Assembly (NCBI GenBank): GCA_020184695.1
Contig: JAANOX010000190.1
Span: forward strand, 186,744 to 250,743
Reading direction: 5' to 3'
DNA: 64,000 bases
From: Histomonas meleagridis 2922-C6/04-290x
Taxonomy: Eukaryota > Protista > Parabasalia
A program made the position numbers and the translations under genes. Of the stretch, positions 6,633-53,626 are shown one piece after another. The notes under the pieces are model-generated. The model had not been told where the DNA came from, made no database searches, and worked only from the letters and a program-made list of their open reading frames with translations. Position 1 is the stretch's first letter. Each line of letters begins with the position of its first letter.

Positions 6633-8954
6633 ATGAATGAATGGAAAGCTCTCCAATTTGCTGAAAAAATAATTTTTGAGTTAGATAGCGAGAAAATTAC
6701 TCAATCAATACAAGCGATAATTGGAATTTATGATAAAAATTATCCCTATTCTTTTAATCTAATCATTAGTCAAATGATATATTTATCATTTGTAAAGCAA
6801 AAAGATGATTTTGATACATATTTAAATATTATTAAAGAAATTGAAACATTAGAAGAAACAAATAAAAGTTCTTCCAAAATTTTGGATGTTTTCACACAAT
6901 TTCTGCTTCATAAAAATTCACAAGAATCATATTATCTTCTTGAGACTCTCGTTTTACAAAATTTAATTGATTCAAGCGTCTTAAAGAATAAGAAAGATCC
7001 TTATTTTGCTCATCATATGTCTAAAAAAGATCTTAATAATTTAGCTCGTTATCAAATCGTAAAGAAATTCTTCGAAAACATTGATGAGCTTTCAAAAGAT
7101 GATTGGAAACTTCATAAACAATTAATTCAAGAAAGAGGCAACACATCAAATATTACAAAAGCTATTAGAAATGATAATATTCAAATACTTCAAGAAATAT
7201 CAACACAAAATAATTTCGATCTTAATAAAATAATTGAATTATCACTTTATGAAATAAATTCTTTTGTTGTGAATAATAAAATTACATTAATTGATTATGC
7301 AGCATTTTTTGGATCTGTTAAATGTTTTAAATATTTACTTATGAATGGTGCAAATGTAAATAATACAGGTAAATATGCAATCGCAGGTGGAAATGAAGAA
7401 ATTATTCATTTATGTGAACAAAATCATTCTGTTTTTAAGGATTCATATGAAATTGCAATTGAATTTCATCGAAATGATATCTTTAAATATGTTTATGAAA
7501 ATAAAATTGAAGATATTCCAAAATTAGAAGAACTTGGAAAGAAATGTGTTTTATATCATAACTATGAAATATTTACATTTTTACAAGATGAAGGAATGCA
7601 AATTACTTCTGATATTATTAATGAATCAGCAAAAATTGGAAATCTTTATCTCATTAAATATTTTTTAGAAGATAATCAACCTTCGAAAGATATTTTAGTT
7701 TTTTCATGTGAATCTAGAAATATTGAAGTTGTTCAATATGTTTTAACAAAAGAAGGAATTGATGTAAATGCTAAAGATATTTATTTGTTTTATTTGATAT
7801 TTATTTTAATATTTTGGGATTTCAAAATAATATTTGGAAATTATTTAAATTATTTAATACAGCACTTATGAAAGCATCTGAAAAAGGTTATACAGAAATA
7901 GTTAAATTACTTCTTGAACAAAAAGGAATTGATATTAATGCTAAAGATATTCATATGTTTTATATAGAATATATTTTAAGAATTTTGGATTTCAAAATAA
8001 TATTTGGAAATTATTTAAATTATTTAATACAGCACTTATTAGAGCATCTGCAAATGGTCAGACCGAAATAGTTAAATTACTTCTTGAACAAAAAGGAATT
8101 GATATTAATGCTAAAAATATTTATTTGCTTTATTTAGAATTTATTTTAATAAATCAATATTTCAAAATAATGATTTTTTGTTTTCAAATAATGTTTGGAA
8201 ATGAATCAAATTATTTGATACTGCAAGTATTTTTGCAATTCGAAATGGACATAGTGAAATACTGAAATTATTTCTTGAACAAGAAGGATTTGATGTTAAT
8301 GCATGTGATTTTTATTTATTTTAAATGATGTTTCTTAAAAAAATTAAATATTTTAAAATAAAATTTGGAAATTATTTTAATTGTTTGAGACATTACTTAT
8401 GATTGCAGTTGAAAATAATCATATTAATATAGTAAAAATATTACTAGAACAAGAAAATATTGATGTAAATATGTGTAATATTTTTAATGTTTTACTAAAG
8501 TTTGTTTAAATAATTTTATGTTTCAAAATAATATATGGAAATTCTTTTTATTATTTCAAACAGCACTTCATTTTGCTCTTAATAATATTGAAATAATGAA
8601 ATTGCTTCTTAAACAGAAGGGAATTAATGTTAATGTGCATGATATTTATTCATTTCGCTTCATATTAATATCAATAATATGGAATATCAAACGAATATTT
8701 GGAAATTATACAAATTATTCGAATCATTACTTATGCTAGCTTCTTATGATAATGAAAACGTAGATATAGTTAAATTACTTCTCGATCATGAAGGATTTGA
8801 TGTTAACCTTAGTATTTATTTGTTAAATTTAATGTTTTTAAATAATATTTGCAAAATTTACATATTATTTTTGATGGCACTTAAAAGAGCTTCATTTAGT
8901 AAAAAAATTGTTCAATTGATTCAAAATAAAATACAAGCTTCAAAAGAAAAATGA
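6633..8954 (+). CDS. DUF3447-type ankyrin-repeat protein 1, cryptically discontinuous (28 17-nt inserts); reconstructed about 614 aa
   Basis: Open 6633-7778 (TLIDYAAFFGSVKCFKYLL motif). Ankyrin blocks at 7859, 8029, 8220, 8390, 8560, 8724 and a cap at 8874-8954 are joined by single codons. 2322 - 28x17 - 1 (extra T in run 8174-79) = 1845 nt = 615 codons including TGA. Confidence 0.8.
7779..8873 (+). other. Array of 17-nt AT-rich inserts each followed by one retained codon (20-nt units), ankyrin gene 1
   Basis: Spacers 7779-7858 (DGGN), 7949-8028 (RWGN), 8119-8219 (RNFGD, one extra T), 8310-8389 (DNGE), 8480-8559 (KYGQ), 8644-8723 (HGGE), 8814-8873 (NAL). Confidence 0.85.
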
Positions 8955-9889: not shown

Positions 9890-12800
9890 TCATGTGATAT
9901 CAATTCCAATTTTTTTCAACTTCTTTATTTCTTTTTGTATTTTCACCATCGTCACCATTTTGTCTTGTTTTAATTGGTCCGAATCGCGTGTGTATTGCGA
10001 AATCATGTTTTGAATGTTATCGAATTCTTTTTGTGATGTGATGTGTTCGGAATCGGTTTCCACAGAATTTTTCAATGAAATAATTCTCTTTTTGAGAACC
10101 GAAATTTTGTTTTTTAATTTTTCTTTTTTGGAAATTATTTCTTTCAAATATCCAATTCTATCACTTAACACCATTTCTTCAAATGCCAATTTTTTCTTAT
10201 TTTCAATCATTTCATTTTCTTCTTGAATATTTTTTCGTAATAATAATTTGATTTCTTGTAAATTTGTATTGTTTCCGTTTCTTCCTTTTTCGATTTTTAT
10301 TTTTAAAATTTTATGGATTTCTCTTTGTTCATTTATATCATTTTTAAGTTTTTCAATTTCGTTTAATTTTTCGGATATTTTTGCGTCCAAATTCAAATTC
10401 GTTTCAGCGCTTTCGCGTAATGCGATTTCGAATCTTTTTCGTTGTCTTTCGATTTTCGTTGAACCATTAATTAAAGTAATTTTCTCAAGTCGTTCGATTG
10501 CGTTTTTTAAGTTTTTATTTGTTTCTTGATATATATTTAATGAATCGCGAATTTGATTTAATTTAAGTTCAATTAAATTTTTTTCTTTTTTCTTTTTATA
10601 ATATAAAGAATTGTTTTTACTGTTGTTTTTGATTTTATTTGTTATTTCGTTTACATTCGCATTCGTAAGTTTTGTTTGTATTGGAATTGTTCTTTTATTA
10701 AACGATTTTTGTTTTGTGGTCGAAAGTGATACATAAAATGATTCAACAAAATCAAACGAAATGAAATTTTGTTGCTTTTGGTTTTTTCGAGTCATTTTAA
10801 TGCGATTTCCAAGAAATTGTATCTCGTTGTTGATTTTCTTGAGTTTTTTCTTCGCTTCTTTAATCATTTGTTCAATTTCAGATTCTTTGAATTGCTTTAG
10901 TGAATTGACATTTAAGTCTTTTTGTTGCTTTTTCCCAAGCGTTTCAACATTAATGTATAAGTTTTTGGTAAATTCGGTCTTATAAAAACTTGTAATTGGT
11001 TCCGTTGATAAATCTTGTTGATCATTATTAGTTTTTTTATCATTTAATGAAGGTAAAATAGAACTTGTTGTTGGTTTGATTATATTTGCTATTTTGGGTT
11101 TGAAATCAACTGAAGATTTTGCATGTGTAAGTATAGGTCTTATAAAAGTGTCACTGTCGGTTTTGTCATCTATCGTTAATTTTAACGGTTTCCGTGCGCT
11201 AACGGTCGTTTTGCTGAAGAATTCTTCTTTCGAATGTTTGCGGATGATGTTGACGAGTTTATCAAGTTCAGCATTGTTGTCACCTTGATCGGAAACATCT
11301 AATTTGAAAGAGATTGTTTTGGAACTATTTGAGGTTCCAATTGTCACTGAATCAGAATTTTTGGAATATAATTTTTTCGATTTGCTTTTACGTTTTTCAT
11401 TTTCTTTGCGCTTTTTTCTTTCTGAGTTATCTGCGCGTTCGCTGCTTATTGATTTTTCGCCATAACTTTGGTATTCTTCGTTCTCATTTCTATGGGGTTT
11501 TCTATTATTATATAAAATTGCTTCGCTTATTCTTTTTGGTTTTCGGCTATTACTTTTGAGTTCTTCACTCTCTGATTCTTCTTCTTTGATGCTTTTGGAT
11601 TTGTTTTTCATTATTTGTTGTTCTTCGCTCTCTGATTCACTTTCTTCTTCGTTTTCATTTCTATGGGGTTTTCTATTATTATATATTATTGCTTCACTTC
11701 TTCGTTTTGGTTTTCGGCTATTGCTTTGACGCTCTTCAATATCTGATTCTTCTTCTTTGCTTACGATTTTTACTTTGTTTTTTGTTTTGCGATGTTTTCG
11801 CTTTTCTGATTTATCAGTGTATTCATTATGTATTGATTTTTCACCATAACTTTGGTATTCTTCGCTCTCTGATTCACTTTCTTCTTCGCTTTCCTTTCTA
11901 TGGCGTTTTCTACTGTTATATAAAGTTGCTTCGCTTCTTCTTTTTGGTTTTCGGCTATTGATTTGACGCTCTTCAATATCTGATTCATATTCTTTGATGC
12001 TTTTGGATTTGTTTTTCGTTTTTTGTTGTTCGTCGTTCTCTGAATCGCTTTCTTCTTCGTTTTCTCTTCTTTTATGCTTTTTGCCTTTGGATGATACTAC
12101 TTCACTTCTTCTTTTTTGTTTTTGTTGTTCTTCGCTCTCTGATTCATCTTCTTCTTTGCTTACGTTTTTTGCTTTATTTTTCGTTTTGTGATGTTTTCTC
12201 CTTTCTGATTTATCATCACTTTGGTATTCTTCGCTCTCCCATTCATCTTCTTCTTTGCTTACGATTTTTGCTTCATTTTTCGTTTTGTGATGTTTTCTCC
12301 TTTCTGATTTATTAGTGTGTTCATTATGCATTGATTTTTCATCATCGCTTTGGTATTCTTCGCTCTCTGATTCATTCTCTTCTAAACTTATGTTTTTGAA
12401 TTTGCTTTGCTTTCTTTGGCGCTTTTTGCTACAAGACGATATTACTTCGCTTCTTCTCTTTGCTTTTTCATCACCAATTTGCTGTTCTTCGCTCTCTGGT
12501 TCACTTTCTTCTAAATTTATGCCTTTGGATTTATTTTGCTTTCTTTGGGGTTTTGTACAATTAGAAAGTATTAACTCGCTTCTTTCTGATTCATTTTCGT
12601 CAATGCTTCTGCTTCTTACATGACTTTTATTATTTAATACCTCTTCACTTCCTTCTAATTTTTCTTCATTTTCTGATTCATTCGAATAATCGCTTTTGCA
12701 TTTTGGTTTGCTTTTCTTTTTAGATAGTGTTTTTTCGTTTTTTTCTGCTTTTTGTCTGTTATTTCGGTATTTTCCGCCTTTTGATTTCGTGCTATATCCG

Positions 12801-14272
12801 CTTCTTCTGCTTGGCTCTTCACTACTTTTTTGATATTCTTCACTTTCTGATGCATTGGAATTATTGCGATGACTTTGATACTCATCATTTTTATATTTTG
12901 TTTCATTTTTCTGATTAAATTGTTCACTTTCGGATTTATTTGTTTCTTTGTTATTACGCGTCGCTTTATTTGGTGAATTTTCTCTTATTTCATATTTCAT
13001 GCTTCTGTTCTCGTTATTATTTGTCTGATATTCATTTTCTGATTCATCTTTTCCATTTTCTCCATTATTCACTTGATGAAGTTTTTCATTATTTTTATTT
13101 TTTGAAGAAATATTATTATAATTATATTGTCGACTTTCTTTCTCTTTGTAAGTTATGTTTTCATTATTTTTTCGTTTTTCATTTTGCTCCAATTTAGAAT
13201 TTGTTTCTTTTGTTATAGATTTTTGGTTTTCTGTTTCATTATTATTATTATTGGATAAATCTAAAAAATCCTTTTTGCCTTTAGAAAAGGTATTTTTCCT
13301 TGTTTGCAAAATGTTTAAATCTTTTTCCTTTTCTTGTTTATTTTGATTGTCACTTTCCTTCACTTTTTGAATGCTTTCTGATCGGTCTGTTAAACTTCTT
13401 GTTTTCTCTGTAGGAAAATCAGATAATTTACCAGTTGAATCTGCAAAAATTCCATTGGGAGTTGAGCTTAAGTTTGAAGAATTTAATGAATATTTTTCTG
13501 AGAATTCAATAGAATTTCTTTCACAAAATGAACTTAAAGAAATGGCTGACAATACGCTCGACCCAAAAGTTAAAGTTGATGGGAATGCTGATAGAGCATA
13601 ATCTTGAAAAATTTCTTCAAGATTTGAAAAGATTGGAAGTGCTGATTGAAGTTGACCGTTTAATTCATTGAAAAATTGATCGTCATCAACAGAATTATTG
13701 AATTGAGATTTAATCAGAACAATTTTCGCCATTTTGCTTTGTAATGAAGCAATTTGTTCTTGAATATGTGGCGGAATTTTGTATTTAGAAAAATCCATCT
13801 CTTGAAGATATTTGATGGCTTCTTTCTTTAACTCTTTATTCATATTAACAAGTTCATTTTTAAGAGAGTTTAACATAGTAATTTGACTTATTATCTCTTC
13901 TTCCGAATTTAATTTTTCTTTATAAGTCGACGAATAAGACTTTATATCTTCAAGATTAATTTGGAGCTTTTCAATTTCAGATTGGATTCTTTTGAGAGCT
14001 ACTCCACGTGTTTTCTTTAATAAGCTTCCTGAATATTTTTGGAGTCTTTTAGTAGCTGCTTGTTTTTCTTTTATTGCATCCATTTTTAATTTCTCAAAAT
14101 TTATTAAATCCTTTTGAATTGAATCTAAGTAATCACGCTTTTCAATGATTTCTCTTTGCAAACTTTCATTTGATTGAATAATACTTTCAATAGAATTCAT
14201 TAATTGTTCGATTGAATACAACAATTCCTTATTTTGACATTGAGCTTTATGTAGCTTTTTAAGAGTGAACAT
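9890..14272 (-). CDS. Large coiled-coil protein with central acidic/basic low-complexity repeats
   Basis: 1460-aa ORF; N- and C-terminal heptad regions; central EESESEEYQS / KRRSEA / KNVSKEE modules. Confidence 0.8.
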   Translation of the reverse strand: MFTLKKLHKAQCQNKELLYSIEQLMNSIESIIQSNESLQREIIEKRDYLDSIQKDLINFEKLKMDAIKEKQAATKRLQKYSGSLLKKTRGVALKRIQSEIEKLQINLEDIKSYSSTYKEKLNSEEEIISQITMLNSLKNELVNMNKELKKEAIKYLQEMDFSKYKIPPHIQEQIASLQSKMAKIVLIKSQFNNSVDDDQFFNELNGQLQSALPIFSNLEEIFQDYALSAFPSTLTFGSSVLSAISLSSFCERNSIEFSEKYSLNSSNLSSTPNGIFADSTGKLSDFPTEKTRSLTDRSESIQKVKESDNQNKQEKEKDLNILQTRKNTFSKGKKDFLDLSNNNNNETENQKSITKETNSKLEQNEKRKNNENITYKEKESRQYNYNNISSKNKNNEKLHQVNNGENGKDESENEYQTNNNENRSMKYEIRENSPNKATRNNKETNKSESEQFNQKNETKYKNDEYQSHRNNSNASESEEYQKSSEEPSRRSGYSTKSKGGKYRNNRQKAEKNEKTLSKKKSKPKCKSDYSNESENEEKLEGSEEVLNNKSHVRSRSIDENESERSELILSNCTKPQRKQNKSKGINLEESEPESEEQQIGDEKAKRRSEVISSCSKKRQRKQSKFKNISLEENESESEEYQSDDEKSMHNEHTNKSERRKHHKTKNEAKIVSKEEDEWESEEYQSDDKSERRKHHKTKNKAKNVSKEEDESESEEQQKQKRRSEVVSSKGKKHKRRENEEESDSENDEQQKTKNKSKSIKEYESDIEERQINSRKPKRRSEATLYNSRKRHRKESEEESESESEEYQSYGEKSIHNEYTDKSEKRKHRKTKNKVKIVSKEEESDIEERQSNSRKPKRRSEAIIYNNRKPHRNENEEESESESEEQQIMKNKSKSIKEEESESEELKSNSRKPKRISEAILYNNRKPHRNENEEYQSYGEKSISSERADNSERKKRKENEKRKSKSKKLYSKNSDSVTIGTSNSSKTISFKLDVSDQGDNNAELDKLVNIIRKHSKEEFFSKTTVSARKPLKLTIDDKTDSDTFIRPILTHAKSSVDFKPKIANIIKPTTSSILPSLNDKKTNNDQQDLSTEPITSFYKTEFTKNLYINVETLGKKQQKDLNVNSLKQFKESEIEQMIKEAKKKLKKINNEIQFLGNRIKMTRKNQKQQNFISFDFVESFYVSLSTTKQKSFNKRTIPIQTKLTNANVNEITNKIKNNSKNNSLYYKKKKEKNLIELKLNQIRDSLNIYQETNKNLKNAIERLEKITLINGSTKIERQRKRFEIALRESAETNLNLDAKISEKLNEIEKLKNDINEQREIHKILKIKIEKGRNGNNTNLQEIKLLLRKNIQEENEMIENKKKLAFEEMVLSDRIGYLKEIISKKEKLKNKISVLKKRIISLKNSVETDSEHITSQKEFDNIQNMISQYTRDSDQLKQDKMVTMVKIQKEIKKLKKIGIDIT

Positions 14273-20075: not shown

Positions 20076-20280
20076 ATTTTTGGCATTAACATCAATTCCT
20101 TCTTGTTCAAGAAGTAATTTAACTATTTCTGTATGACCATTTGAAGATAGAAATATAAGTGCTGTTCTGAATAATTTAAATAATTTCCAAATATTATTTT
20201 GATATCCTAAATTATTAAAATGAATAATACAAATAAATATCTTCAGAATAGCATCAATTCCTTCTTGTTCAAGTAATTTG
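20076..20280 (-). pseudogene. Orphan ankyrin remnant with a decayed 17+3 spacer
   Basis: Minus strand block TALIFLSSNGHTEIVKLLLEQEGIDVNAKN (20165-20076), preceded by ATATCAAAATAATATTT-GGA-AATTATTTAAATTATTC-AGA; total spacer 73 nt (degenerate). Confidence 0.75.
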
Positions 20281-20711
20281 ACAAATGGTGGAATATTATC
20301 TTTATTAAGAAAAGCTTTGACAAAGTATAAATTATAATGGGACGATGTTTCACAAATAATATCATCGTAAATTTCAGTTTTATCTTCTAAAAATGAAAAA
20401 AATTGATATTTCTGTTTGAATGCATTTATTTCCTAAGGTATTTATAGTATTTCATATGAAATTTCCTTATCAAATATATTCATTATTGATTCAACTGAAG
20501 ATTCAATATCCATGTCATCTATACTAAAAATAATATGAACCATATTACTTGGTTTGTTAAGGCATTCGAATTTAACAATTTACAAAAAATGAAGCGGCTT
20601 GAGTGTTTAAAGTATTGAAATTTAAACATCGAATTATGACGAATATTGAAATCACATTATTTAAAAATAAATAATAAACGGTATGATAAATTTAACGGTC
20701 TTTAAAAATAT

Positions 20712-25061: not shown

Positions 25062-25608
25062 ATGGGACCAAATGAACATTGCGACTGGGAAACACATCTA
25101 TCAATAAATCAAGAAATTATTAGTTTTAATGAAGAAAATTTCTCTAAATCTTTAGGTTTAATAATCAACAAATTTGATGAAATCCATCCTTTATCTTATG
25201 ATTTAATTATTATTAAAATGATATATTATTCCTTTGTAATTAAAAACAATAAAAAGAATTTATTTTTGAATATTATAAAAGAAATAAGAACATTTGAAGA
25301 GTGTAATAAAATCAAATCGAATATATTTGATATATTTGGACTATTTCTTAAAAATAAACATACAGATTATTTTATACAGCACTCACGTTAGCATCAAAAA
25401 ATGGTCATATAGAAATATTTAAATTACTTCTTGAACAAGAAGGAATTGATATTAATGCTAAAGATTTTTATCTAATATTCGTTCTAATAATAAGATATTA
25501 CAAAATAATATTTGGAATTTATTTAAAATATTTCAAACAGCACTTATGTTAGCATTTGAAAAATGTTATACAGAAATATTTAAATTACTTCTTGAACAAA
25601 AAGCATAG
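25062..25608 (+). pseudogene. Internally deleted ankyrin-family gene with one 71-nt 17+3-type spacer
   Basis: N-terminal helical domain homologous to 6633 and 34550; ankyrin block 25376-25465; spacer 25466-25536 (first unit 9 nt short, then D, G, Q); second block ends in TAG 25606-08. Confidence 0.75.
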
Positions 25609-31327: not shown

Positions 31328-32259
31328 AGATATTTATAGTGTATTTAAATGTTTTTTGTTTTTGTTACTTAATTTTTTTGTGCATGACAAAATAATACTA
31401 AATCTATAAAGTGTTGTTATCTATCGATGCCAAAAATTGAGAGCGCGCCGATCTGTAAGAACAGTTCGTAACGTTTTCATAACGTTCAAGTGTATGTAAA
31501 TCATATAAAAAGCCAAAACTTATTCAACGCTTATTTGGTCGGGGAACTTTTTGATCATATAATGTGCACTTTTTAAAATCAAAGAAGCAAACACTTGATG
31601 AATAAAAGAAAAAATGATTCATATAAATCATTGTTTGATTAACTGTCTAAAATAGATGCAGTTGTATCAGGTATGGAGCACAAGTCCGCCGAAGGATTAA
31701 GTATGAAAAGAAATTCTTGATATACCAATGTTATCATGTAAAATCCATCGTTTCTTATATAAATAACTGTGTGCTTATGCTATTTATATGAATTTTCAAA
31801 ATTATTAAAATTAATTTTTGAATTTTGGATCAAAAATATAAAAAAATAAATATGCATAACAAAATACAACAATATATTCAAGTAATCATTGGATTTCACT
31901 TGCGTTGCAAAAAGAGTTTTAACTTTCAACTTTTTATGCAATGATTCAAAGTAATATAAAATCTTTTCGTTATGAAAAATATTTCATAAGAGAATATTCT
32001 CGCACAATAACAAGCGTTTGTTCACCAATATCATACAACACCACTATCTCTATAATGAAAAACTTAGTCGAGCGACATTTATCGACTAGTTAATTAACCG
32101 AAAAAGTTAACAAAAAAAAAAATCAATAAAAACGATCAAAATCGATTTTGAAACGGAATTGAATGCTTCAAAGAGAAATTCGGTTCACAATTTTTTCAAA
32201 AATTGTGTAAGATAAAACTACAAAAGCATTAGAAAACTGATTTCAATGTGGTTCCAAAA

Positions 32260-33700
32260 ATGTTTTTGATTCTATTAGCAGCGGCAAATTCAGTTGCAAT
32301 AACATATACAGTAAGATCTGGTGATACATTAACATCAATTGCACAACTTTTTAGTGTCACAATTGCACAAATTCAAGAATGGAACGGAATTTCAAATCCA
32401 AACTTCATTACAGTTGGACAAGTTCTTAATATTAAAGAAGCGAAAAGAACATATATTACATATACAGTTAAATCAGGTGATTCACTTTCAGTGATTGCAG
32501 CAAACTATGGACTTACAACGGAAGATCTTGCAATATCCAATATGAAAGCATACCCATACACACTTTATGTTGGAGAAGTTCTCTTAATTCCAGTTCCACT
32601 TCCAACACCATCACGATCACCGACAGCTTCACCTTCTAAATCACCCACAGCTTCACCATCCAAATCGCCAACAGCTTCTCCATCTAAATCGCCAACAGCT
32701 TCTCCTTCTAAATCGCCAACAGCTTCTCCTTCTAGATCGCCAACAGCTTCTCCTTCTAAATCGCCAACAGCTTCTCCTTCTAAATCACCCACAGCTTCTC
32801 CTTCTAAATCACCCACAGCTACTCCTTCTAAATCACCCACAGCTACTCCTTCTAAATCACCCACAGCTACTCCTTCTAAATCACCCACAGCTACTCCTTC
32901 TAAATCACCCACAGCTACTCCTTCTAAATCACCCACAGCTACTCCTTCTAAATCACCCACAGCTACTCCTTCTAAATCACCCACAGCTACTCCTTCTAAA
33001 TCACCCACAGCTACTCCTTCTAAATCACCCACAGCTACTCCTTCTAAATCACCCACAGCTACTCCTTCTAAATCGCCAACAGCTACTCCTTCTAAATCAC
33101 CGACAGCTACTCCTTCTAAAACATTTTCTCCAACAGAAGCATTTACGCAATCAAACACATATACGCCAACAGAAGCGCCGCCGCCATCATCGCCAACTCC
33201 AGCTCCGACGCCATTGCCAAGTTGGACAACAACAGTAACAGCATCGCAATTATCTGCGTTTGGATGGTATAATACGTCAGAAGCCATTGTCAGCGATCTT
33301 CAGAAATGCGTTGAAGAGTTCATCAGTAGTCGACAATCATTTTTACGTTTCATAAGTCACTGTGCATATAAATCGAATTTTTGGATTATATACACATAAC
33401 ACCAAAGAAGATATTAATACGAAATACACAGGAAGTGGATATCTCCAAATTGAAGGGTATTCTAAATACGAAGAATTTTCAGAATATATTTCAGATTCGA
33501 AAGTTGTTGACGAAGGTCATTTGTATGTATCTGAACATTATCCATTTCTTATTTCAGGATATTATTGGAGACGCGAAGGTATTGACTCGTATTGCTGCCA
33601 AGGGATCAGTGAAGAAGAAATCGCACTTCGACTTTATGGGAAATATGAAGGAGCTGAAAACATTCGAGAATATTACCAACGCGCGCTTGGCATCTTCTAA
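32260..33700 (+). CDS. LysM x2 - Pro/Ser/Thr linker - GH19-like protein, copy 2 (one +T frameshift)
   Basis: ATG 32260; extra T in run 33378-82 relative to copies 1 and 3. Confidence 0.75.
32617..33120 (+). repeat. Coding minisatellite, 21 x 24 nt (SPTA[S/T]PSK)
   Basis: 504 nt = 21 units; mucin-like linker. Confidence 0.95.
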
Positions 33701-34549
33701 AGATATTTATAGTGTATTTAAATGTTTTTTGTTTATTATTTGTTATTTCCAAAATATAAAAATTGCATTTCTTTTACCTTTTTATAATTTGATTATTCTG
33801 TTAATATTTTCATTTCATTGTGTTCCAAAATATGAAATAAAAGACTTAATGCACATCTTTAGTTTATTAATCAAAATAAAGTATGAAAAAATTGTAAGAA
33901 TATCTACTTGAGTGTAAGTGCATGCAACTTTCCATATATAAAGCATATACATAATAATTTTTGAAGAAAAAATAATTGTGGCAAATGATTACTAAAACAA
34001 AAAGTTTTTAATTTCGCAATAAAAATTCGGCAATCCTATTTTACTAAATTGTTTACATATTAAATGTAACAAAACGATCAATAAGCAATTAAAATTTTAT
34101 AGGTTCAAATTGCTTTTGAAAAGTTAACGAAATTTATTCCTTCCTCTCTGATAGTTGATTATGTTTTAATGTAAGTGAATGTTTATACACATATTTTATA
34201 TGAACTAATTTTAGAACATATTGAAGGATGTGGATTCAAACATTTTCCTTATTTCAACTTGTTCAATTATAATTTTTTTAACACATAGAATTCAATATTA
34301 AATCCATAAAAACCTCTAAATTCTAATTATATATTTAATGTTGTAGATTATATATAAAATAACATGTTATTGGCAATTTCAATCCATAAAAAATATATAA
34401 ATATTTATAATTTGTTAAATGTTTAAATTAAAGAAAATATTTTAGAAAAAATTGAAGATCTATAGTTCTTCTTTTGTGATCTGGGAAACTTAATACACTT
34501 TTTCAATAAATTATTATTGACTTAAACCGCACATATCATCTGGAAGAAC

Positions 34550-37500
34550 ATGCGAAAACGCAAAACAAATATAAGCAAAAAAGAAAAAATATTTCCCCAA
34601 AACATAAAACTAGAATTATTCTCTAAGCTTGAACAAATAATAATGAATCTAACAGAAGAAAATATAAATTTGTCAGCTAAACATACAATAAAATTATTTG
34701 ATTTTAATTTACCATATTCATTTCATCTTGTTATAAGTAATTTAATTTATTATGCATTTTTATCACAAAGAAATAAGTGTACTACGTATTTTAAATTTTT
34801 AGAAATAATTCAAAAGAAAGAAGAGGAAAAAATTAATTCTAAATACAATATTATTGAAATATTCCTTAATTATATCATAAAAAATAATTCTCAAGAAGCT
34901 CTATATCTAATTGAGCAAATGATTCGACAAAATTTAATTAATGCAAACATTACAAAGATAATTCCTTCAAAATATTTTGCTCATTACAAAACTACAACTG
35001 AAAACAAAGAATGGTTATGTGGTGATCGATTTTGTTCAACTTTTGTAAAAAATTATGACCAACTTTCAAAGAATGATTTTGAACTTCATAAAAAATATGT
35101 TAAAAAAGGACATAATCCGAATGAAATTGCAAAAATAATTCGAAATGATAAAATAGAAAAACTTCAAGAAATATCATCACAAAATGATTTTGACTTTAAT
35201 CAAATAATTGTACCATCACTTTATGAAAGATGTTCATTTATTAACAATCGGAATGTTACATTAATTGATTATGCAGCATTTTTTTCTTCAGTTAAATGTT
35301 TTAAATATTTACTTATGAATCAAGCAAATGTAAATAATACAGGTAAATATGCAATTGCAGGTGGAAATGAAGAAATTGTTCATTTATGTGAACAAAATGG
35401 TTCATCATTTATAGGGTCTTATGAAATAGCAATTAAATCTCACCGAAATGATATTTTTCTTTATCTTTATGAAAATAAAATGGATAATTTGTGTGAGGAA
35501 CATGATACAAAACCTCATAAAAATTATCTGAAATATGAAGATTTAATAAAATTTTGTGTTATGAGTGGAAATTATGAAATCCTATCATTTTTAGAAGGAG
35601 AAGGAACTAAAATCAATGAATCTATCATCAAAAAATCAGCAGAAATAGGTAATATATATCTACTCATGTATTTTCTTCATAATAACAAGAAAATACCAAA
35701 AAATATTTTAATTTATTCTATTAAATCAGAGAATGCTGAAGTTGTGGAATATATCATTCTTAAACATAGAAAAGAAATCAATTTTAATTCTGTAAATATT
35801 TTTTGTAAAATTTCAATGCTTTCATACAATATTTGATAATGATTAATTAAGTTATTTAGAACACCTTTGATATATGTTGCTGAAAAAGGTTACACAGAAA
35901 TAGTTAAATTACTTATTAAACAAAAAGAAATTGATATTAATGCTAAAGATATTTATTTGTTTTCTTTGAGATTTATTTTAATAATTTTATATTTCAAAAT
36001 AATATTTAAAAATTATTTAAATTATTTAGAACAGCACTTATTTATGCATCTAAAAATGGTCATACAGAAATAGTTAAATTACTTCTTGAGCAAAAAGGAA
36101 TTGATATTAATGCGAAAGATAAAATTAATTTGTTTTATTAGGTATTTATTATAATAATTTGATATTTCAAAACAATATTTAGAAATTATTTAAAATATTA
36201 TGGACAGCACTTATTTGGGCATCTTCAAAAGGTCATACAGAAATAGTTAAATTACTTCTTGAGCAAAAAGGAATTGATATTAATGCTAAAGATATTGATT
36301 TGTTTTATTTGAAATTTATTTTAAAAATTTTATATTTCAAAATAATATTTGGAAATTATTTTAATTATTTAAAACAGCACTTATGCTTGCTACTTCATGG
36401 AAACGCATAGATATAGTCAAATTACTTCTTGAACAAAAAAGAATTGATATTAATACTAAAGATATTTTATTCCTTGACCTAAAATTTATTTTAATGATAT
36501 AATATTTCAAAATAATTTTTGGAAATTACAAAAAATATTTAAAACAGCACTTATTTTTGCATCTAGAGATGGTAATTTAGATATAGTTAAATTGCTTTTG
36601 GAACATAAAAGAATTGCTTTAAATGTTATAGATGATTTTTATTTACTATAATCGATATTATTCAGAGTTGCTTTGGGTTTTAAGCCAAAATTTAAAGTTT
36701 TATTATATAATTTGAAACACCATTAATTTGGGCCTCAAAAAATGGTCATAAAGAAATTGTTAAAATACTTATTGAAAAAGAAGGAACTAATATTAATGCC
36801 AAAAATTTTTGAATGTTTTGTTCAAGGTTTAAATTAATTAAAATGGATTTCTTAATAATGTTTGGAAAATATTCATATTGTTTCAAACAGCACTTATAAA
36901 GGCATCTTCAAGTGGATACATTGAAATAGCCAAATTACTTTTAGGAAAAGAAGGAATTGATGTTAATGCTAAAGATATTATTTCTATATTTTGTTTAGAA
37001 TTTATTTATACAATTGGATGTGTTATATGTGTATTTGGGATTTGTTTAAAATACTTGAAACAGCAATTGTGTTTGCAGCTAAAAATGGTCACACAGAAAT
37101 CGTTAAATTACTTCTTGAACAAAAAGGAATTGAAATTAATGCTAAAGATGAATTTTTGTTGTTTTATTTGATATTTATTATTATAATTTGATGTTTTAAG
37201 ATAATATTTGGAATTTACTTAAAATATTTTGTACAGCACTCTTGAAAGCATTGAGAAATGGTTGTACAAAAATAGTTAAATTACTTCTTGAACAAAAAGG
37301 AATTGATATAAATGCTAAAGATATTTATTTGTTTTATTTGATATTTATTATTATAATTTGATGTTTTAAGATAATATTTGGAAATTATTTAAATTATTTA
37401 GAACAGCACTTATGTTAGCATCTTATAATGGTTATACAGAAATTGTTAAATTACTTATTGAACAAAAAGGAATTGATATAAATGCTAAAGATATTTATTT

Positions 37501-37835
37501 GTTTTATTTGAAATTTATTTTAATAATTTTATATATCAAAATAATATTTGGAAATTATTTAAAATATTTGGTACAGCACTTATGAAAGCATCTGAAAAAG
37601 GTCATACAGAAATAGTTAAATTACTTCTTGAACAAGAAGGAATTGATATTAATGATAAAGATAAAATAAATTTAAATAATTTGAAATTTTAAAATAATAT
37701 TTGGAAATAATTTAAATTATTCAGAACAGCACTTATGTTTGCATCTAGAAATGGTTATACAGAAATATTTAAATTACTTCTTGAACAAGAAGGAATTGAT
37801 ATTAATGTAAAAGATATTTATTCGTTTTATTTTAA
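34550..37835 (+). CDS. DUF3447-type ankyrin-repeat protein 2, cryptically discontinuous (47 17-nt inserts); reconstructed 828 aa
   Basis: Open 34550-35797, then twelve stop-free 90-nt blocks at 35861, 36031, 36204, 36374, 36544, 36717, 36887, 37060, 37233, 37403, 37573, 37726. 3286 - 47x17 = 2487 nt = 829 codons, ending in TAA 37833-35. Confidence 0.85.
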
Positions 37836-37855
37836 TTTTATTTTTATTTTTTTAG
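35798..37855 (+). other. Array of 17-nt inserts + single retained codons, ankyrin gene 2
   Basis: Spacer lengths 63,80,83,80,80,83,80,83,83,80,80,63 give NDNR, EYKR, KGDRW, EYGK, KNGK, DDWKE, KWGQ, IRDGE, EDDGC, DDGR, EYGG, KEGR; the terminal units give TAA then TAG. Confidence 0.9.
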
Positions 37856-38315
37856 ACTTCAAAACAATGGATCATTTACACAACCGCAGACCAATTCTAA
37901 AAACAGATTACCATTTGGGAGGTGTCTGGAAAAATATTTTGTTCAAATTTGTGAAATAGTTAGACATTGATAATAAGAAACACTTAAATAAGTAACATTT
38001 ACATATGATGAACCAATCATTGATAATAAATATGAATATATAATTGAACTTTTGTTTTCCGTTTTTGTTTTAACACGAGATGAAGTAATAGCAAATGTAC
38101 GCGATTTAGTCAATGTATTACTTTGTGTATATGTATCACTTCCTTCAACAGTATCATTTTGTTACTGTCATACCACAAAATGTTGAACTTTTATATGAAT
38201 TTTGTGTCAGAACATATTTGATACAAGAAAATATGGAAAATATTAAACTTTGAAATAAATAACTTTCCTTTGTTGAAATATTCCAAATAAAACAAAATGC
38301 AAAAATGGGAATTGT

Positions 38316-40472
38316 TTATGCGTAAAGGTTTGCAACCCATGAAGCAAAGTCGTATCCACCATCGACTTCTTGAAGTTCGGACTTGAGGAATTCGACGTCT
38401 TCTGGTGAGAAGAAGCGTTGAAGTTGTGCCTCGGTGACGACTGGGTTATTTTGTGCGATAGCGCGGAATGCCTCTTCAGTTGTTTCCTTTGTTTCTGCCT
38501 TAGAGAAGCGGTCGAGCATGAACTTGACGTAGTTGTCGAAGTCGAGGGTTTCAGCACCGCCTGTGTACTTGTTGATGATATCCTTGCATTCATCATCGGT
38601 AGCTGGTTCACCGAGTGCTGTCAAGCATGCGTTAAGTTCGTAGTACTGAAGTGTGTTAGAGTTATCAGAGTCGAATGACTTGAATGTCTCACGGAATTCG
38701 GCGAGTTGCTCTTCTGGGATTTCGAGACCTTTAGCGGCAGCAATAGCGCTGTCGATGGCTGCGATGAGTGTGTTGATGTGTGCAAGAATTTGGTCGAACA
38801 TGTCGACGATTGAGTCTGGTGTATATTCGGCATCAAGTTGAAGATCATTTTGTTCGAGCTCTTCGTATGGTGCATTGAGCTCTGAGACGGAGCCCTTCTT
38901 TTCTTCGACTTCATGTGACATTTGGATAAGTTTCTCACGCTTCTCTTCGTTTTCGCCATCAACGCCATTGACTTGTTCTTCGAGTTTCTTGGACTCTTCA
39001 ACCTTCTCGTTGGCGAGTTGGTTGTATGATTGGATCTTAGCATTACGTTCTTCTTCTTCCTTAAGGTTCTCGATGTTAAGTTCAAGGTGCTTGATGTGTG
39101 ATGCAACTTGTTCTGCGTATGACTCAAGGAGTGTTGTTGAGTACTTGGCTCTTGTGTTAAGGTTTAACTTGTCTAATTCTTCATATGGTGCCTTAAGTTC
39201 TTCGATTTCGCCGCGGATTCCGGTTTCCTTCTCCTTAAGTTGTTCAAGAACTGCTAATTGTTCTTCAACGGAGCCGGAAATGGAGTCGATTTCGCCGTGG
39301 ACATCTTGGCATTTTTGAACAAGTTCTGTGCACTTAGTATCATATGCATTGATGAGGTCAAGTTCTGCTTGCTTAAGTTCTTCCTTAAGGCTCTTGGTTT
39401 GGTTGGCTGCTGTTTCATCAAGTTCGTTGAGTTTGTTGGTGAGGACTTCTGGTTCGAGACCTTCTGGTGCAACTGGTTCTGGACGGCCAGTTGTCTTGCA
39501 CTTTGTGCCTAATGATGCCCATGTACGGAGTGCCTTAGCACGAAGTTCGACGATGTTTGGACGAACATTACGTGTGTACTTAAGAACATCAATAAGTTTG
39601 GCCTTGATGCCAACAACAGTCTTTTCATAATCACTGTTGAGTAATGAGTCAGATGCGGATTGCATGGCATCAATGGCTGCACGTGCTTCTTCGGCATATG
39701 TGTTCTTAAGATCGGCGATTTCCTTTTGGATGCCAATTGTACGCTTAAGCTTTTCGGCTTGTTGTTCAACCTTTGATTCTCCAGCAAAGAAGTGGAAGAA
39801 TTCGGCAACTTGTGTAACAACAGATTTTTCATCTGGAATAACATCAACAAGATCTTCTGGATCAAGGTAGACTGTAAGTCCGATTTCATTGCATGCCTTG
39901 AATGCTTGTTCACAGTTGTTTGTGTGGTTGGATTGGTCAAGGGCGTTGTAGTCTAATAAGTTTGGACGGAACTTGTTGATTAAAGCGCAGAAGGCAAGAC
40001 CTGATGACCATGAGTTTGTGAAGTTGGTGATGTTAACACCATCATAGCCTTGTGTGTTCTTTTGGCACCAGATAAGAAGTGCAGAACGTGCTGTGGCTTC
40101 TTCAACAGAGATATCTTCGATGGCGAACTTGTTGATGCAAGACCATGTAAGACCTAATGTAAGCTTTGTGTTCTTGTCAACGATATCATCTGGGCTGATG
40201 TTAACGAGTTTGATGCCCTTCTTGTTGGTGATGTAATCAATGGCCATACCAACATTTTCGATCATGTGATACCTGTTCTTGCATTCCTTGTGCCATTTGC
40301 CAGTGATTGGTTCCTTACCAATAATTTCGAGAAGTTGGATAAGCTTGACACCATCAGCAAATTCATCAAGAACGCTCTCGAACTTGATTCCCTTTGTAGC
40401 AAGGTGTTTAGCGCACCAACGTGAGAAAACTTTGATTTGTGTCTTTTCCCAGCCTTTATCAAGAATTGTCAT
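38316..40472 (-). CDS. ACTN: Alpha-actinin (2 CH domains, coiled/spectrin rod, EF hand)
   Basis: WEKTQIKVFSRW, KLTLGLTWSCI, ALLIWCQKNTQGY, WSSGLAFCALI, C-terminal EF hand FKSFDSDNSNTL; ATG 40472. Confidence 0.95.
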   Translation of the reverse strand: MTILDKGWEKTQIKVFSRWCAKHLATKGIKFESVLDEFADGVKLIQLLEIIGKEPITGKWHKECKNRYHMIENVGMAIDYITNKKGIKLVNISPDDIVDKNTKLTLGLTWSCINKFAIEDISVEEATARSALLIWCQKNTQGYDGVNITNFTNSWSSGLAFCALINKFRPNLLDYNALDQSNHTNNCEQAFKACNEIGLTVYLDPEDLVDVIPDEKSVVTQVAEFFHFFAGESKVEQQAEKLKRTIGIQKEIADLKNTYAEEARAAIDAMQSASDSLLNSDYEKTVVGIKAKLIDVLKYTRNVRPNIVELRAKALRTWASLGTKCKTTGRPEPVAPEGLEPEVLTNKLNELDETAANQTKSLKEELKQAELDLINAYDTKCTELVQKCQDVHGEIDSISGSVEEQLAVLEQLKEKETGIRGEIEELKAPYEELDKLNLNTRAKYSTTLLESYAEQVASHIKHLELNIENLKEEEERNAKIQSYNQLANEKVEESKKLEEQVNGVDGENEEKREKLIQMSHEVEEKKGSVSELNAPYEELEQNDLQLDAEYTPDSIVDMFDQILAHINTLIAAIDSAIAAAKGLEIPEEQLAEFRETFKSFDSDNSNTLQYYELNACLTALGEPATDDECKDIINKYTGGAETLDFDNYVKFMLDRFSKAETKETTEEAFRAIAQNNPVVTEAQLQRFFSPEDVEFLKSELQEVDGGYDFASWVANLYA

Positions 40473-47927: not shown

Positions 47928-48234
47928 ATAAAAGAAATGTTATGTGAAATAGCTGAATTCTATTTTGTCCTTTGTGATTTGATAATCAAGATAAAACGGG
48001 TAAAATATTGTTAAGACGACGCAATTTCAACCTTTCATTAGTCATTTTGATTTTCAATATGATAAATGAGAAGTCACTTAATTTATGTTTATGCACATAA
48101 AGTTTCCAGATAAATAACAATTGTTTCCATAGTCATAGCAATAAAAAATCGTGTAAATGTAATTGACTTTGAAACGTTTCATTCTGATTGGAAATTAAAG
48201 TTTCATTTACACTTCTTCTAAAAAAATCATCGAT

Positions 48235-48316
48235 GGTACTTTGGCCGAGTGGTCTAAGGCGTTGGATTTAAGCCCCAATACCGAGAGGTGCGTGGGTTCG
48301 AACCCCACAGGTACCA
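48235..48316 (+). tRNA. trnL-TAA: tRNA-Leu (anticodon TAA)
   Basis: Acceptor GGTACTT/AGGTACC-A, D loop AGTGGTCTA, anticodon loop TT-TAA-GC, long variable arm, GTGGG-TTCGAAC-CCCAC; followed by a T run. Confidence 0.92.
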
Positions 48317-48647
48317 GTTTTTTGTTTTTGATTTATCCTTGAATCATGACTTTCATTCTATTATAAATGTATTCCCTTTTGATGCGATTTCTTCTATAAT
48401 TTCATTGTTCATTTTCATTCCTTCTTTTTCTGAAAACATGAAGATTTCATAATTATTAAATACGATATGCATTTTTTCCCAAGATATATTAAATTTCTAT
48501 CACTTAAATTACAATTATCTTATTTAAGATATTACAATTATCGGCTCTGATGCAAAACGCCCTCCATTTTGCGGTTTTTGAACGATAGGAAATTTGAGGA
48601 AAAATAGAAATGCCACATTAGGGCACCCCATCCATCATCCTGACGGC

Positions 48648-52060: not shown

Positions 52061-53626
52061 TTATTATCAATGTCTAACTATTTCACAAATTTGAACAAAA
52101 TATTTTTCCAGACACCTCCCAAATGGTAATCTTTTTCTTCAAAAATTATTATGTATATGCTTTATATATGGAAAGTTGCATGCACTTACACTCAAGTAGA
52201 TATTCTTACAATTTTTTCATACTTTATTTTGATTAATAAACTAAAGATGTGCATTAAGTCTTTTATTTCATATTTTGGGAACACAATGAAATGAAAATAT
52301 TAACAGAATAATCAAATTATAAAAAGGTAAAAGAAATGCAATTTTTATATTTTTGGAAATAACAATTAATAAACAAAAAACATTTAAATACACTATAAAT
52401 ATCTTTAGAAGATGCCAAGCGCGCGTTGGTAATAATCTTGCATGTTTTTCAGCTCCTTCATATTTCCCATAAAGTCGAAGTGCGATTTCTTCTTCACTGA
52501 TCCCTTGGCAGCAATACGAGTCAATACCTTCGCGTCTCCAATAATATCCTGAAATAAGAAATGGATAATGTTCAGATACATACAAATGACCTTCGTCAAC
52601 AACTTTCGAATCTGAAATATATTCTGAAAATTCTTCGTATTTAGAATACCCTTCAATTTGGAGATATCCACTTCCTGTGTATTTCGTATTAATATCTTCT
52701 TTGGTGTTATGTGTATATAATCCAAAATTCGATTTATATGCACAGTGACTTATGAAACGTAAAAATGATTGTCGACTACTGATGAACTCTTCAACGCATT
52801 TCTGAAGATCGCTGACAATGGCTTCTGACGTATTATACCATCCAAACGCAGATAATTGCGATGCTGTTACTGTTGTTGTCCAACTTGGCAATGGCGTCGG
52901 AGCTGGAGTTGGCGATGATGGCGGCGGCGCTTCTGTTGGAGTATATGTGTTTGATTGCGTAAATGCTTCTGTTGGAGAAAATGTTTTAGAAGGAGTAGCT
53001 GTCGGTGATTTAGAAGGAGAAGCTGTTGGCGATTTAGAAGGAGTAGCTGTGGGTGATTTCGAAGGTGAAGCTGTCGGTGATCGTGATGGTGTTGGAAGTG
53101 GAACTGGAATTAAGAGAACTTCTCCAACATAAAGTGTGTATGGGTATGCTTTCATATTGGATATTGCAAGATCTTCCGTTGTGAGTCCATAGTTTGCTGC
53201 AATCACTGAAAGCGAATCACCTGATTTAACTGTATATGTAACATATGTTCTTTTCGCTTCTTTAATATTAAGAACTTGTCCAACTGTAATGAAGTCTGGA
53301 TTTGAAATTCCGTTCCATTCTTGAATTTGTGCAATTGTGACACTAAAAAGTTGTGCAATTGATGTTAATGTATCACCAGATCTTACTGTATATGTTATTG
53401 CAACTGAATTTGCCGCTGTTAATAGAATCAAAAACATTTTTGAAAGAATTGTGAACCGAATTTCTCTTTTGAAGCATTCCGTTTTTATTGAATTTTTTTT
53501 TTGTTAACTTTTTCAGTTAATTAACTAGTCAATAAATATCGCTCGACTAAGTTTTTCATTATAGAAACAATAGTATTATATGATATTGGTGAGCAAACGC
53601 TTGTTATTGTGCGAGAATATTCTCTT
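52061..53626 (-). repeat. Inverted segmental duplicate of 31988-33971 joined to an inverted copy of 37905-37976
   Basis: Reverse-complement identity of promoter, CDS and 3' flank; 52061-52132 is an exact reverse complement of 37905-37976. Confidence 0.9.
52405..53437 (-). CDS. LysM x2 - linker (4 repeats) - GH19-like protein, copy 3
   Basis: Open through the GH19-like domain; one extra A (plus-strand T5 52445-49) shifts the last ~14 codons; the homologous stop is at 52405-07. Confidence 0.8.

Follow-up and report, generated by a model that had tools for sequence, protein, structure and literature searches.

Inserts of 17 nucleotides separate single codons in an ankyrin-repeat gene of Histomonas meleagridis and are probably removed from its RNA

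An ankyrin-repeat gene of the poultry parasite Histomonas meleagridis is broken by 47 AT-rich inserts, each exactly 17 nucleotides (nt) long, that spare isolated codons between them. The gene spans 3286 nt on the plus strand, at positions 34550-37835 of a 64,000-nt stretch of contig JAANOX010000190.1 (the window). Deleting the 47 inserts leaves 3286 - 799 = 2487 nt, which translate into 828 amino acids with the sole stop at the end. This observation at the DNA level is confirmed and statistically solid, and the segmentation into 17+3 nt is supported over every alternative that we built. The signals of every known type of intron, internal eliminated sequence (IES) or translational bypass element are absent from the inserts. 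Judged from its sequence, the gene is best explained as functional and as encoding an 828-residue protein that combines a DUF3447 domain with ankyrin repeats, and the inserts are probably cut from its RNA so that single codons are left in the message.

The gene consists of an unbroken N-terminal part followed by twelve ankyrin blocks set apart by spacers of quantised length. The N-terminal part comprises 416 codons from the ATG at 34550 to 35797 and is supported as coding by its open reading frame (ORF), Pfam matches, homologues and substitution pattern. Each of the twelve blocks is 90 nt long and carries the motif T-A/P-L ... I-N-x-K-D, and the frames of the blocks cycle through 2, 1 and 0. 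An extra spacer of 63 nt precedes block 1, and those between blocks measure, in order, 80, 83, 80, 80, 83, 80, 83, 83, 80, 80 and 63 nt; the lengths are restricted to these three values, all of the form 17a+3b. We enumerated every stop-free arrangement of 17-nt pieces and codons, and each spacer has one clearly best parse, in which three or four 17-mers alternate with single codons. Only after removal of the 17-nt pieces do twelve tandem repeats of 34-35 residues appear, with the turn D-x-x-G-x-T-[AP]-L, and the decoded protein is then colinear with an uninterrupted ankyrin protein (P0188) over 460 residues. Glycine fills the penultimate slot in eight of the twelve decoded hairpins (seven GGA, one GGG). 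Several particulars of the original prediction for this locus are borne out by these results, namely a spacer at 36294-36373 that retains GAA (36311), TAT (36331), GGA (36351) and AAA (36371) and so reads EYGK, twelve 90-nt blocks in shifting frames without a stop, and a total of 829 codons after subtraction of 47x17 nt, that is, 828 codons and the terminal stop.

Read from the 5' end, hairpin 0 (35798-35860, 63 nt) decodes as NDNR (AAT GAT AAT AGA), with inserts at 35798-35814, 35818-35834 and 35841-35857 and two codons side by side between the second and the third. It leads into block 1 (35861-35950, 30 codons, frame 2), which is followed by hairpin 1 (35951-36030, 80 nt; EYKR from GAG TAT AAA AGA; inserts starting at 35951, 35971, 35991 and 36011) and block 2 (36031-36120, frame 1). 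In the four 83-nt spacers the first codon touches the preceding block, as the AAA of hairpin 2 does (36121-36203; KGDRW; inserts from 36124, 36144, 36164 and 36184). Block 3 (36204-36293, frame 0), hairpin 3 (inserts from 36294, 36314, 36334 and 36354) and block 4 (36374-36463) come next, then hairpin 4 (36464-36543, 80 nt; KNGK; inserts from 36464, 36484, 36504 and 36524), which lacks any GT dinucleotide, and block 5 (36544-36633). Hairpin 5 (36634-36716, 83 nt; DDWKE; inserts from 36637, 36657, 36677 and 36697) has no glycine and is followed by block 6 (36717-36806), hairpin 6 (36807-36886, 80 nt; KWGQ; inserts from 36807, 36827, 36847 and 36867) and block 7 (36887-36976). The glycine of hairpin 7 (36977-37059, 83 nt; IRDGE; inserts from 36980, 37000, 37020 and 37040) is the one encoded by GGG. 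Block 8 (37060-37149) is separated by hairpin 8 (37150-37232, 83 nt; EDDGC; inserts from 37153, 37173, 37193 and 37213) from block 9 (37233-37322), and hairpin 9 (37323-37402, 80 nt; DDGR; inserts from 37323, 37343, 37363 and 37383) leads to block 10 (37403-37492). Hairpin 10 (37493-37572, 80 nt; EYGG; inserts from 37493, 37513, 37533 and 37553) and block 11 (37573-37662) precede hairpin 11 (37663-37725; KEGR; inserts from 37666, 37686 and 37706), whose 63 nt equal 80 - 17 with the first insert absent and whose first codon likewise touches the block before it. Beyond block 12 (37726-37815) lies insert 47 (37816-37832), and the TAA at 37833-37835, in the slot of a retained codon, is the proposed stop. 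If this terminal insert is kept, the frame continues for 47 codons to a TAG at 37957-37959. The conventional ORF of the unprocessed gene runs from 34550 to 35836 and ends after 428 amino acids at the TGA at 35834-35836.

The length of the unit is set by evidence other than arithmetic, which by itself leaves it open, as any length equal to 2 mod 3 accommodates both 80 and 83 nt. Hypervariable triplets that contain G or C recur at exactly 20-nt spacing, and hairpins 0 and 11 contain one 17-mer fewer than the usual 80-nt spacer while still decoding four codons. Fourteen 80-nt spacers from five loci align without gaps, some with about half of their insert positions changed. A further H. meleagridis region, L005 (WSYJ01000186.1, 7352-7510 and 8294-8500), holds a continuous junction, EIN-SLRKVRN-SLIL, whose SLRKVRN stretch lies uninterrupted at 7429-7454, and a paralogous junction, DVN-SPGKV-(17 nt)-RN-ALIF, with one AT-rich insert of 17 nt at a codon boundary; the boundary of this lone insert can be placed at either of two positions 1 nt apart (CGA or AGA, both arginine). 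Two decayed ankyrin fragments in the window, at 20076-20300 (minus) and 25376-25602 (plus), serve as internal negative controls. They lack the N-terminal domain, their blocks are truncated and their spacers of 73 and 71 nt have lost the quantisation, so indels do occur once such a gene is dead.

Other segmentations were tried and rejected. Reading through the spacers in the upstream frame with a subsequent frameshift meets in-frame stops in seven of 11 spacers, and a split into 51+17 nt (ATT TAT ... GGA AAT) leaves stops in three of 14; at hairpin 6 both end at a TGA, the second triplet after block 6 in the continued frame. Removal of a single 68-nt intron gives negative hairpin scores at all 13 offsets, with hydrophobic, glycine-less hairpins, and eight of the 13 also leave in-frame stops in some spacers. 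Removal of the whole spacer lowers the alignment to P0188 to 342 bits, against 410 bits with 17-nt removal. A dynamic-programming decoder run over the whole gene with insert lengths of 8-29 nt gave no useful discrimination, AT-rich codons incurring little cost in this genome.

The blocks and the isolated triplets carry the marks of coding sequence. The twelve blocks contain no stop in frame and 23 and 60 in the remaining two frames. When the 138 observed substitutions were scattered at random with the observed spectrum, 6.6 stops were expected in the blocks, and the probability of none was 0.0006, a value made somewhat optimistic by the star tree assumed in this neutral simulation. Retained triplets differ sharply from the 17-nt inserts in GC content (0.36 vs 0.06) and in G content (0.35 vs 0.03), and of the 20 possible registers that of the slots has the highest column diversity (0.435 vs 0.179, Mann-Whitney p = 5e-5). 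We also built a profile from 890 four-residue hairpins of uninterrupted ankyrin proteins found in a representative search, which is dominated by K/N, N/D, G (71%) and R/N. On this profile register 17 scores highest of the 20 (+2.73) and is free of stops, and it alone among the registers yields canonical xxGx ankyrin hairpins. The original prediction had pointed to the lack of stops among the slots; this holds in register and is weak as sole evidence, with 10 of the 20 registers likewise stop-free. The isolated triplets retain the character of ankyrin hairpins, including the synonymous glycine codons GGA, GGG and GGT.

The N-terminal domain places the gene in a family of DUF3447-ankyrin proteins of parabasalids. 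The N-terminal ORF matches DUF3447 (PF11929, 1.1e-06) and Ank_2 (PF12796, 2.1e-08) in Pfam, and the tandem repeats typical of the family are present. Its closest named homologues are two H. meleagridis proteins from assembly GCA_020186115.1, and named homologues come from H. meleagridis and Tritrichomonas foetus; about 12 more lie on gut-metagenome scaffolds at 45-59% identity. Compared with RNA contigs of paralogues that are about 97% identical, the N-terminal ORF shows 21 differences, 10 synonymous and 11 non-synonymous. The resulting ratio of non-synonymous to synonymous substitution rates (dN/dS) is 0.26 (p = 0.003, with 19% of sites synonymous). The gene lineage is under purifying selection, and the inserts must therefore be neutralised in some way.

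The inserts are uniform in composition and length and have none of the splice or excision signals that we looked for. They are 91% A+T and follow the consensus RTTT-N9-RTTT, with a purine at position 1 in 44 of the 47 and T at positions 2-4, and again a purine at position 14 in 44 and T at positions 15-17; along the spacers this gives a 20-nt periodic pattern of RTTT-N9-RTTT-RRN. The four inserts of a spacer form four position-specific sequence classes, one of which recurs unchanged on a metagenome scaffold with only 50% identity in the N-terminal domain. The first dinucleotide is AT in 28 inserts, AA in eight and GT in six, and the last is TT in 37. None of the 47 has GT-AG, GC-AG or AT-AC ends, even when all registers that give the same product are allowed. 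The parabasalid branch point ACTAAC is absent from the insert position table, in which only the purines at positions 11 and 14 are conserved. U12-type (AT-AC) introns have AT-AC termini and a conserved ATATCCTT element at the 5' end. While 28 of the 47 inserts begin with AT, none ends with AC, and positions 5-8 are A/T-rich and not CCTT. TA is found at both boundaries of only four of the 47, as it would be in IESs of the ciliate type, and the take-off codon matches the landing triplet in none. RNAalifold found no pairs conserved across 14 spacers, and the fold of one spacer gave z = +0.43. Lone 17-nt inserts that restore an ORF elsewhere in the window are not in excess over other lengths, so that ankyrin genes are the only ones in the window to carry the inserts.

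A 76-nt element lies just 3' of the ankyrin gene at 37901-37976 and has an inverted copy, 98.7% identical, 14 kb away at 52061-52136. RNA contigs match 37905-38043 exactly (depth 65 in run X1, see below), and the element has no Rfam match. We rejected it as a candidate guide RNA; its duplex with the spacers reached z of about -2 for two of them and 0.1 for a third.

RNA of the ankyrin family is contiguous across the junctions. We mapped contigs of four RNA runs (X1-X4) onto 34500-40400. Thousands of RNA contigs match ankyrin blocks, and all junctions and loose ends shown have 12 or 15 contiguous letters between blocks. The hairpins at these junctions, such as IYGD, NRGN, VYGN, EDGK and DNGK, have the lengths and the xxGx character of the decoded hairpins. 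No array piece longer than 93 nt appears in X1-X3 among the contig pieces listed, which comprise the longest and some of those at joints, so none of those shown spans a block through a spacer. Of the 31-mers sampled from the array, a share of 0.21-0.30 occurs in the RNA runs and 0.41-0.67 in four DNA runs (0.67 in the two best); 0.34 of the array's 31-mers lie wholly within blocks, and the share in the RNA runs is no higher than this. A message about 800 nt shorter than the gene would fit these data, whereas one that retained the inserts and was decoded by skipping them would not. As the RNA of the family is contiguous and each inspected genomic copy is interrupted, removal from the RNA is favoured and hopping of the ribosome disfavoured. 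Within the wider family at least two junctions are uninterrupted in the DNA, the one at 7429-7454 in L005 and the first junction of P0006.

The minus strand immediately downstream of the ankyrin gene carries an alpha-actinin-like gene (38316-40472) with two calponin homology (CH) domains, a coiled-coil rod and EF-hands. Its GC content of 0.41 is far above that of its surroundings, and RNA contigs match it exactly at a depth of 300-1800, which shows that the RNA was obtained from the same strain or a nearly identical one. Over 40053-40394 the contigs have 5-15 mismatches, and judging from these a paralogue of this gene probably exists.

The interrupted layout recurs in other DNA. It is found in two further H. 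meleagridis regions (L002 and L005, GCA_020186115.1) and on ENA metagenome scaffold L001, which was assembled independently and has the slots AGA, GCT, GGA and TAT. Within the window every junction of this ankyrin subfamily is interrupted. Nine of 11 inspected N-terminal homologues from metagenomes have read-through tails that stop within a few residues of entering the first spacer, and a further one (P0010) is ambiguous; in P0006 the first junction is uninterrupted (VMFE) and the second interrupted. DUF3447-ankyrin ORFs on other metagenome or Logan contigs (P0006, P0016, P0018 and P0023) end after the repeats in short hydrophobic tails, for example ...GIDVNVKTNFEVFILFYK, which suggests that other organisms have inserts of this kind and that these ORFs run into them. 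Scans of JGI metagenomes for the interrupted and the joined signatures returned nothing and one unrelated, apparently bacterial ankyrin gene, respectively. In protein collections a 40-amino-acid query from block 5 gave no candidate for a processed peptide, and a profile search of representatives found generic giant ankyrin proteins. A protein search with P0118 had no H. meleagridis protein among the best 120 of 5445 matches.

Several observations weigh against excision of 17-nt units from the RNA of this gene. The only contig that matches the array exactly (X4, 36820-36913, depth 29) is unprocessed and includes spacer sequence; its depth lies within the range of 2.7-65 of exact intergenic contigs in X1-X3, with none listed for X4. 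Contigs over the N-terminal part show 3-11 mismatches and so derive from paralogues, and neither a processed form of the locus 34550-37835 nor a junction specific to it is among the RNA contigs shown. At the loose end past 37665, a consensus of two contigs reads GAA GGA AAA ACA GCA CTA ATG TAT..., whereas GAA GGA AGA ACA GCA CTT ATG TTT is expected from the decoded locus; it is a near paralogue. Uninterrupted paralogues at other sites in the 43-Mb genome could supply all of the contiguous RNA. Conservation at the insert ends is loose (RTTT...RTTT), and for 31 of the 47 inserts the boundary could shift by 1-3 nt. Several parses into multiples of 17, for example 17+34+17 with a different triplet retained, score equally on the hairpin profile, so the case for keeping slots 1 and 2 is based on their composition and variability. 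In more diverged arrays six of 16 spacers misfit 17a+3b with 3-6 codons. A 101-nt spacer in the neighbouring interrupted ankyrin gene (8119-8219) has no stop-free parse of this form and can be accommodated only by assuming one insert of 18 nt or a 1-nt error within a run of T, the problem site adjoining an apparently duplicated class-3 insert. In the L005 array several spacers are 1-3 nt off the rule, and one block is frame-broken internally at 7224-7225. The pooled ratio of non-synonymous to synonymous changes (pN/pS) among the blocks is 0.80, between out-of-frame controls of 0.46 and 1.02, and is uninformative. The claim in the original prediction that block substitutions are mostly synonymous or conservative is thus not upheld, nor does this locus provide independent confirmation of the earlier one, the two being paralogues; the 17+3 segmentation stands, and to call the skip code confirmed was an overstatement in view of the paralogous origin of the contigs that map here.

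The same observations can be read as a sign that the interrupted arrays are silent, either pseudogenes or a reservoir of cassettes, that the RNA comes from uninterrupted paralogues and that the product of this locus is the 428-residue ORF. This would account for RNA contigs that all differ from the locus or are unassignable, for uninterrupted junctions within the family, for the pN/pS value and for the submitters' annotation, which ends related genes at the first spacer (P0008). We nevertheless consider silent arrays unlikely, given blocks without a stop where 6.6 are expected under neutrality, spacer quantisation that is kept in intact genes and lost in the two decayed fragments, and isolated triplets that still look like ankyrin hairpins down to their glycine codons. 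Among the copies inspected, every subfamily junction in the window and nine of the 11 N-terminal homologues are interrupted. The genome paper is silent on ankyrin (PMC8529796), yet thousands of ankyrin contigs are present in the RNA. A second possibility is that each spacer of 63-83 nt is a single non-canonical intron, that the repeats have 30 residues and that the 20-nt period is a repeat internal to the intron. The blocks are whole codons, direct joining of them is always in frame, and the periodic pattern itself could be taken for such a repeat. The product, however, would lack the conserved xxGx turn present in every RNA junction shown and would align less well to uninterrupted homologues, as the bit scores above indicate. 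Such introns would also leave unexplained why lengths change in steps of 3 or 17 nt only, why L005 holds a lone 17-nt insert and why GC content and variability are so high in the triplet slots, and we regard them as quite improbable.

The two remaining alternatives retain the 17-nt unit and place its removal elsewhere than in the RNA. In translational bypassing the inserts would stay in the message and the ribosome would hop 17 nt from codon to codon, a reading in keeping with inserts in phase 0, of fixed length and without splice signals. It is contradicted by the complete lack of matching take-off and landing codons, by the near-perfect efficiency that 47 hops per protein would demand, by the depletion of spacer 31-mers among the RNA contigs together with the contiguous RNA junctions, and by the absence of a conserved structure that could promote bypass; we find it hardly credible. 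Elimination from the DNA in the manner of ciliate IESs, with inserts removed from a somatic or expressed copy, agrees with their shortness, AT-richness and precise bounds, and RNA evidence cannot separate removal at the RNA level from removal at the DNA level. TA-bounded inserts are too few for this type, however, and DNA runs of cultured cells carry the interrupted form (0.67 of the words in the best runs). To our knowledge a division into germline and soma is not known in parabasalids, which also counts against DNA elimination, and we judge it extremely unlikely.

Comparison with known systems brings out likenesses to several and identity with none. Introns of 15-16 nt are found in Stentor and of 18-21 nt in the chlorarachniophyte nucleomorph, and ultra-short spliceosomal introns, as far as we know, retain the usual splice-site and branch signals and separate normal exons. 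For Mikrocytos mackini the published description gives introns of 16-17 nt with highly conserved sequences (PMC10245619). The Histomonas inserts resemble these in being many tiny, AT-rich pieces of conserved sequence and near-invariant length, with all 47 parsing as 17 nt, a value within the Mikrocytos range given there. They are unlike them in their ends, none being GT-AG, GC-AG or AT-AC, and in occurring three or four in a row at a single position of the repeat, between exons of one or two codons. Spliceosomal introns of parabasalids, of the Trichomonas type, follow the pattern 5' GTAYGT ... ACTAACACACAG 3', the shortest known to us being about 23-25 nt. The H. meleagridis genome has 573-638 annotated ordinary introns (PMC8529796). 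The inserts come from the same lineage, where short introns are present, and differ from these introns in their fixed and smaller length and in lacking the conserved motifs.

Bypass elements, of 50 nt in phage T4 gene 60 and of 27-55 nt in the mitochondrial 'byps' of Magnusiomyces, are likewise short non-coding inserts in ORFs without splice signals, with many per gene in Magnusiomyces. They stay in the messenger RNA and need matching codons and structure, whereas the Histomonas inserts show neither and are missing from the RNA contigs. IESs of Paramecium are TA-bounded and 26 nt or more in length. As in ciliates, the Histomonas inserts are numerous, short, AT-rich and ORF-breaking and would have to be removed precisely; they differ in being shorter and rarely TA-bounded, ciliate IESs being removed from the DNA of the somatic nucleus, and we know of no nuclear dualism in Histomonas. 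Micro-exons of animals and plants (3-30 nt) make the point that an exon of one codon can be spliced in, but these lie between long canonical introns and depend on enhancer complexes, whereas the Histomonas codons are strung at 20-nt spacing. Unlike bulge-helix-bulge introns of the tRNA or HAC1/XBP1 type, the inserts have no helix-bulge structure across the cut sites, in line with the lack of RNAalifold pairs. Searches of the literature on 17-nt introns, on introns or splicing in Histomonas and Dientamoeba and on Histomonas ankyrin proteins found no description of this layout.

In the mechanism that we propose for removal at the RNA level, each 17-nt insert would be excised from the transcript and its flanking codons joined, giving a messenger RNA about 800 nt shorter that would encode canonical ankyrin repeats of 34-35 residues with xxGx hairpins. 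The sites would be the twelve beta-hairpin tips and the position before the stop, all at codon boundaries with one or two codons between successive inserts. We infer that the locus is transcribed and processed, that excision would take place in the RNA and that the unit would be 17 nt and not a multiple of it. As machinery we favour a length-measuring activity that would recognise a RUUU-N9-RUUU element, for which a very divergent spliceosome or an endonuclease together with a ligase are candidates. The wider proposition is that H. meleagridis and at least one relative from gut metagenomes possess an undescribed form of RNA processing, one that would excise 17-nt AU-rich RUUU-N9-RUUU elements devoid of canonical splice signals and join exons down to one codon in length, dozens of times in a transcript, and would define a new ruler-type class of intervening sequence; we hold the case for and against it to be evenly balanced.

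The window is AT-rich throughout (GC 0.21-0.41) and contains other unusual stretches. A 383-codon ORF (32248-33399), in a region where the GC skew is strongly negative, contains a 24-nt tandem repeat at 32616-33120 whose 21 copies are 96% identical. The region 10001-14000 has a strong AT skew (-0.41), tandem repeats of 99 and 129 nt at 12121-12584 and a minus-strand ORF of more than 900 codons. A tRNA-Leu with anticodon TAA (48234-48317) is the only Rfam or ARAGORN match in the window.

If the inserts do leave the RNA, these would be the first protein-coding genes written codon by codon between fixed-length elements that are not GT-AG, and current ideas of how small exons and introns can be would be challenged. 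A new mechanism of recognition, a ruler or a reader of AU elements, would be implied, with the enzyme as the tractable question. Gene finders and metagenome pipelines would overlook such genes everywhere. The current annotation of H. meleagridis, a significant pathogen of poultry, stops them at the first spacer, so that proteomics and work on vaccine targets rely on a proteome that lacks a large ankyrin family.

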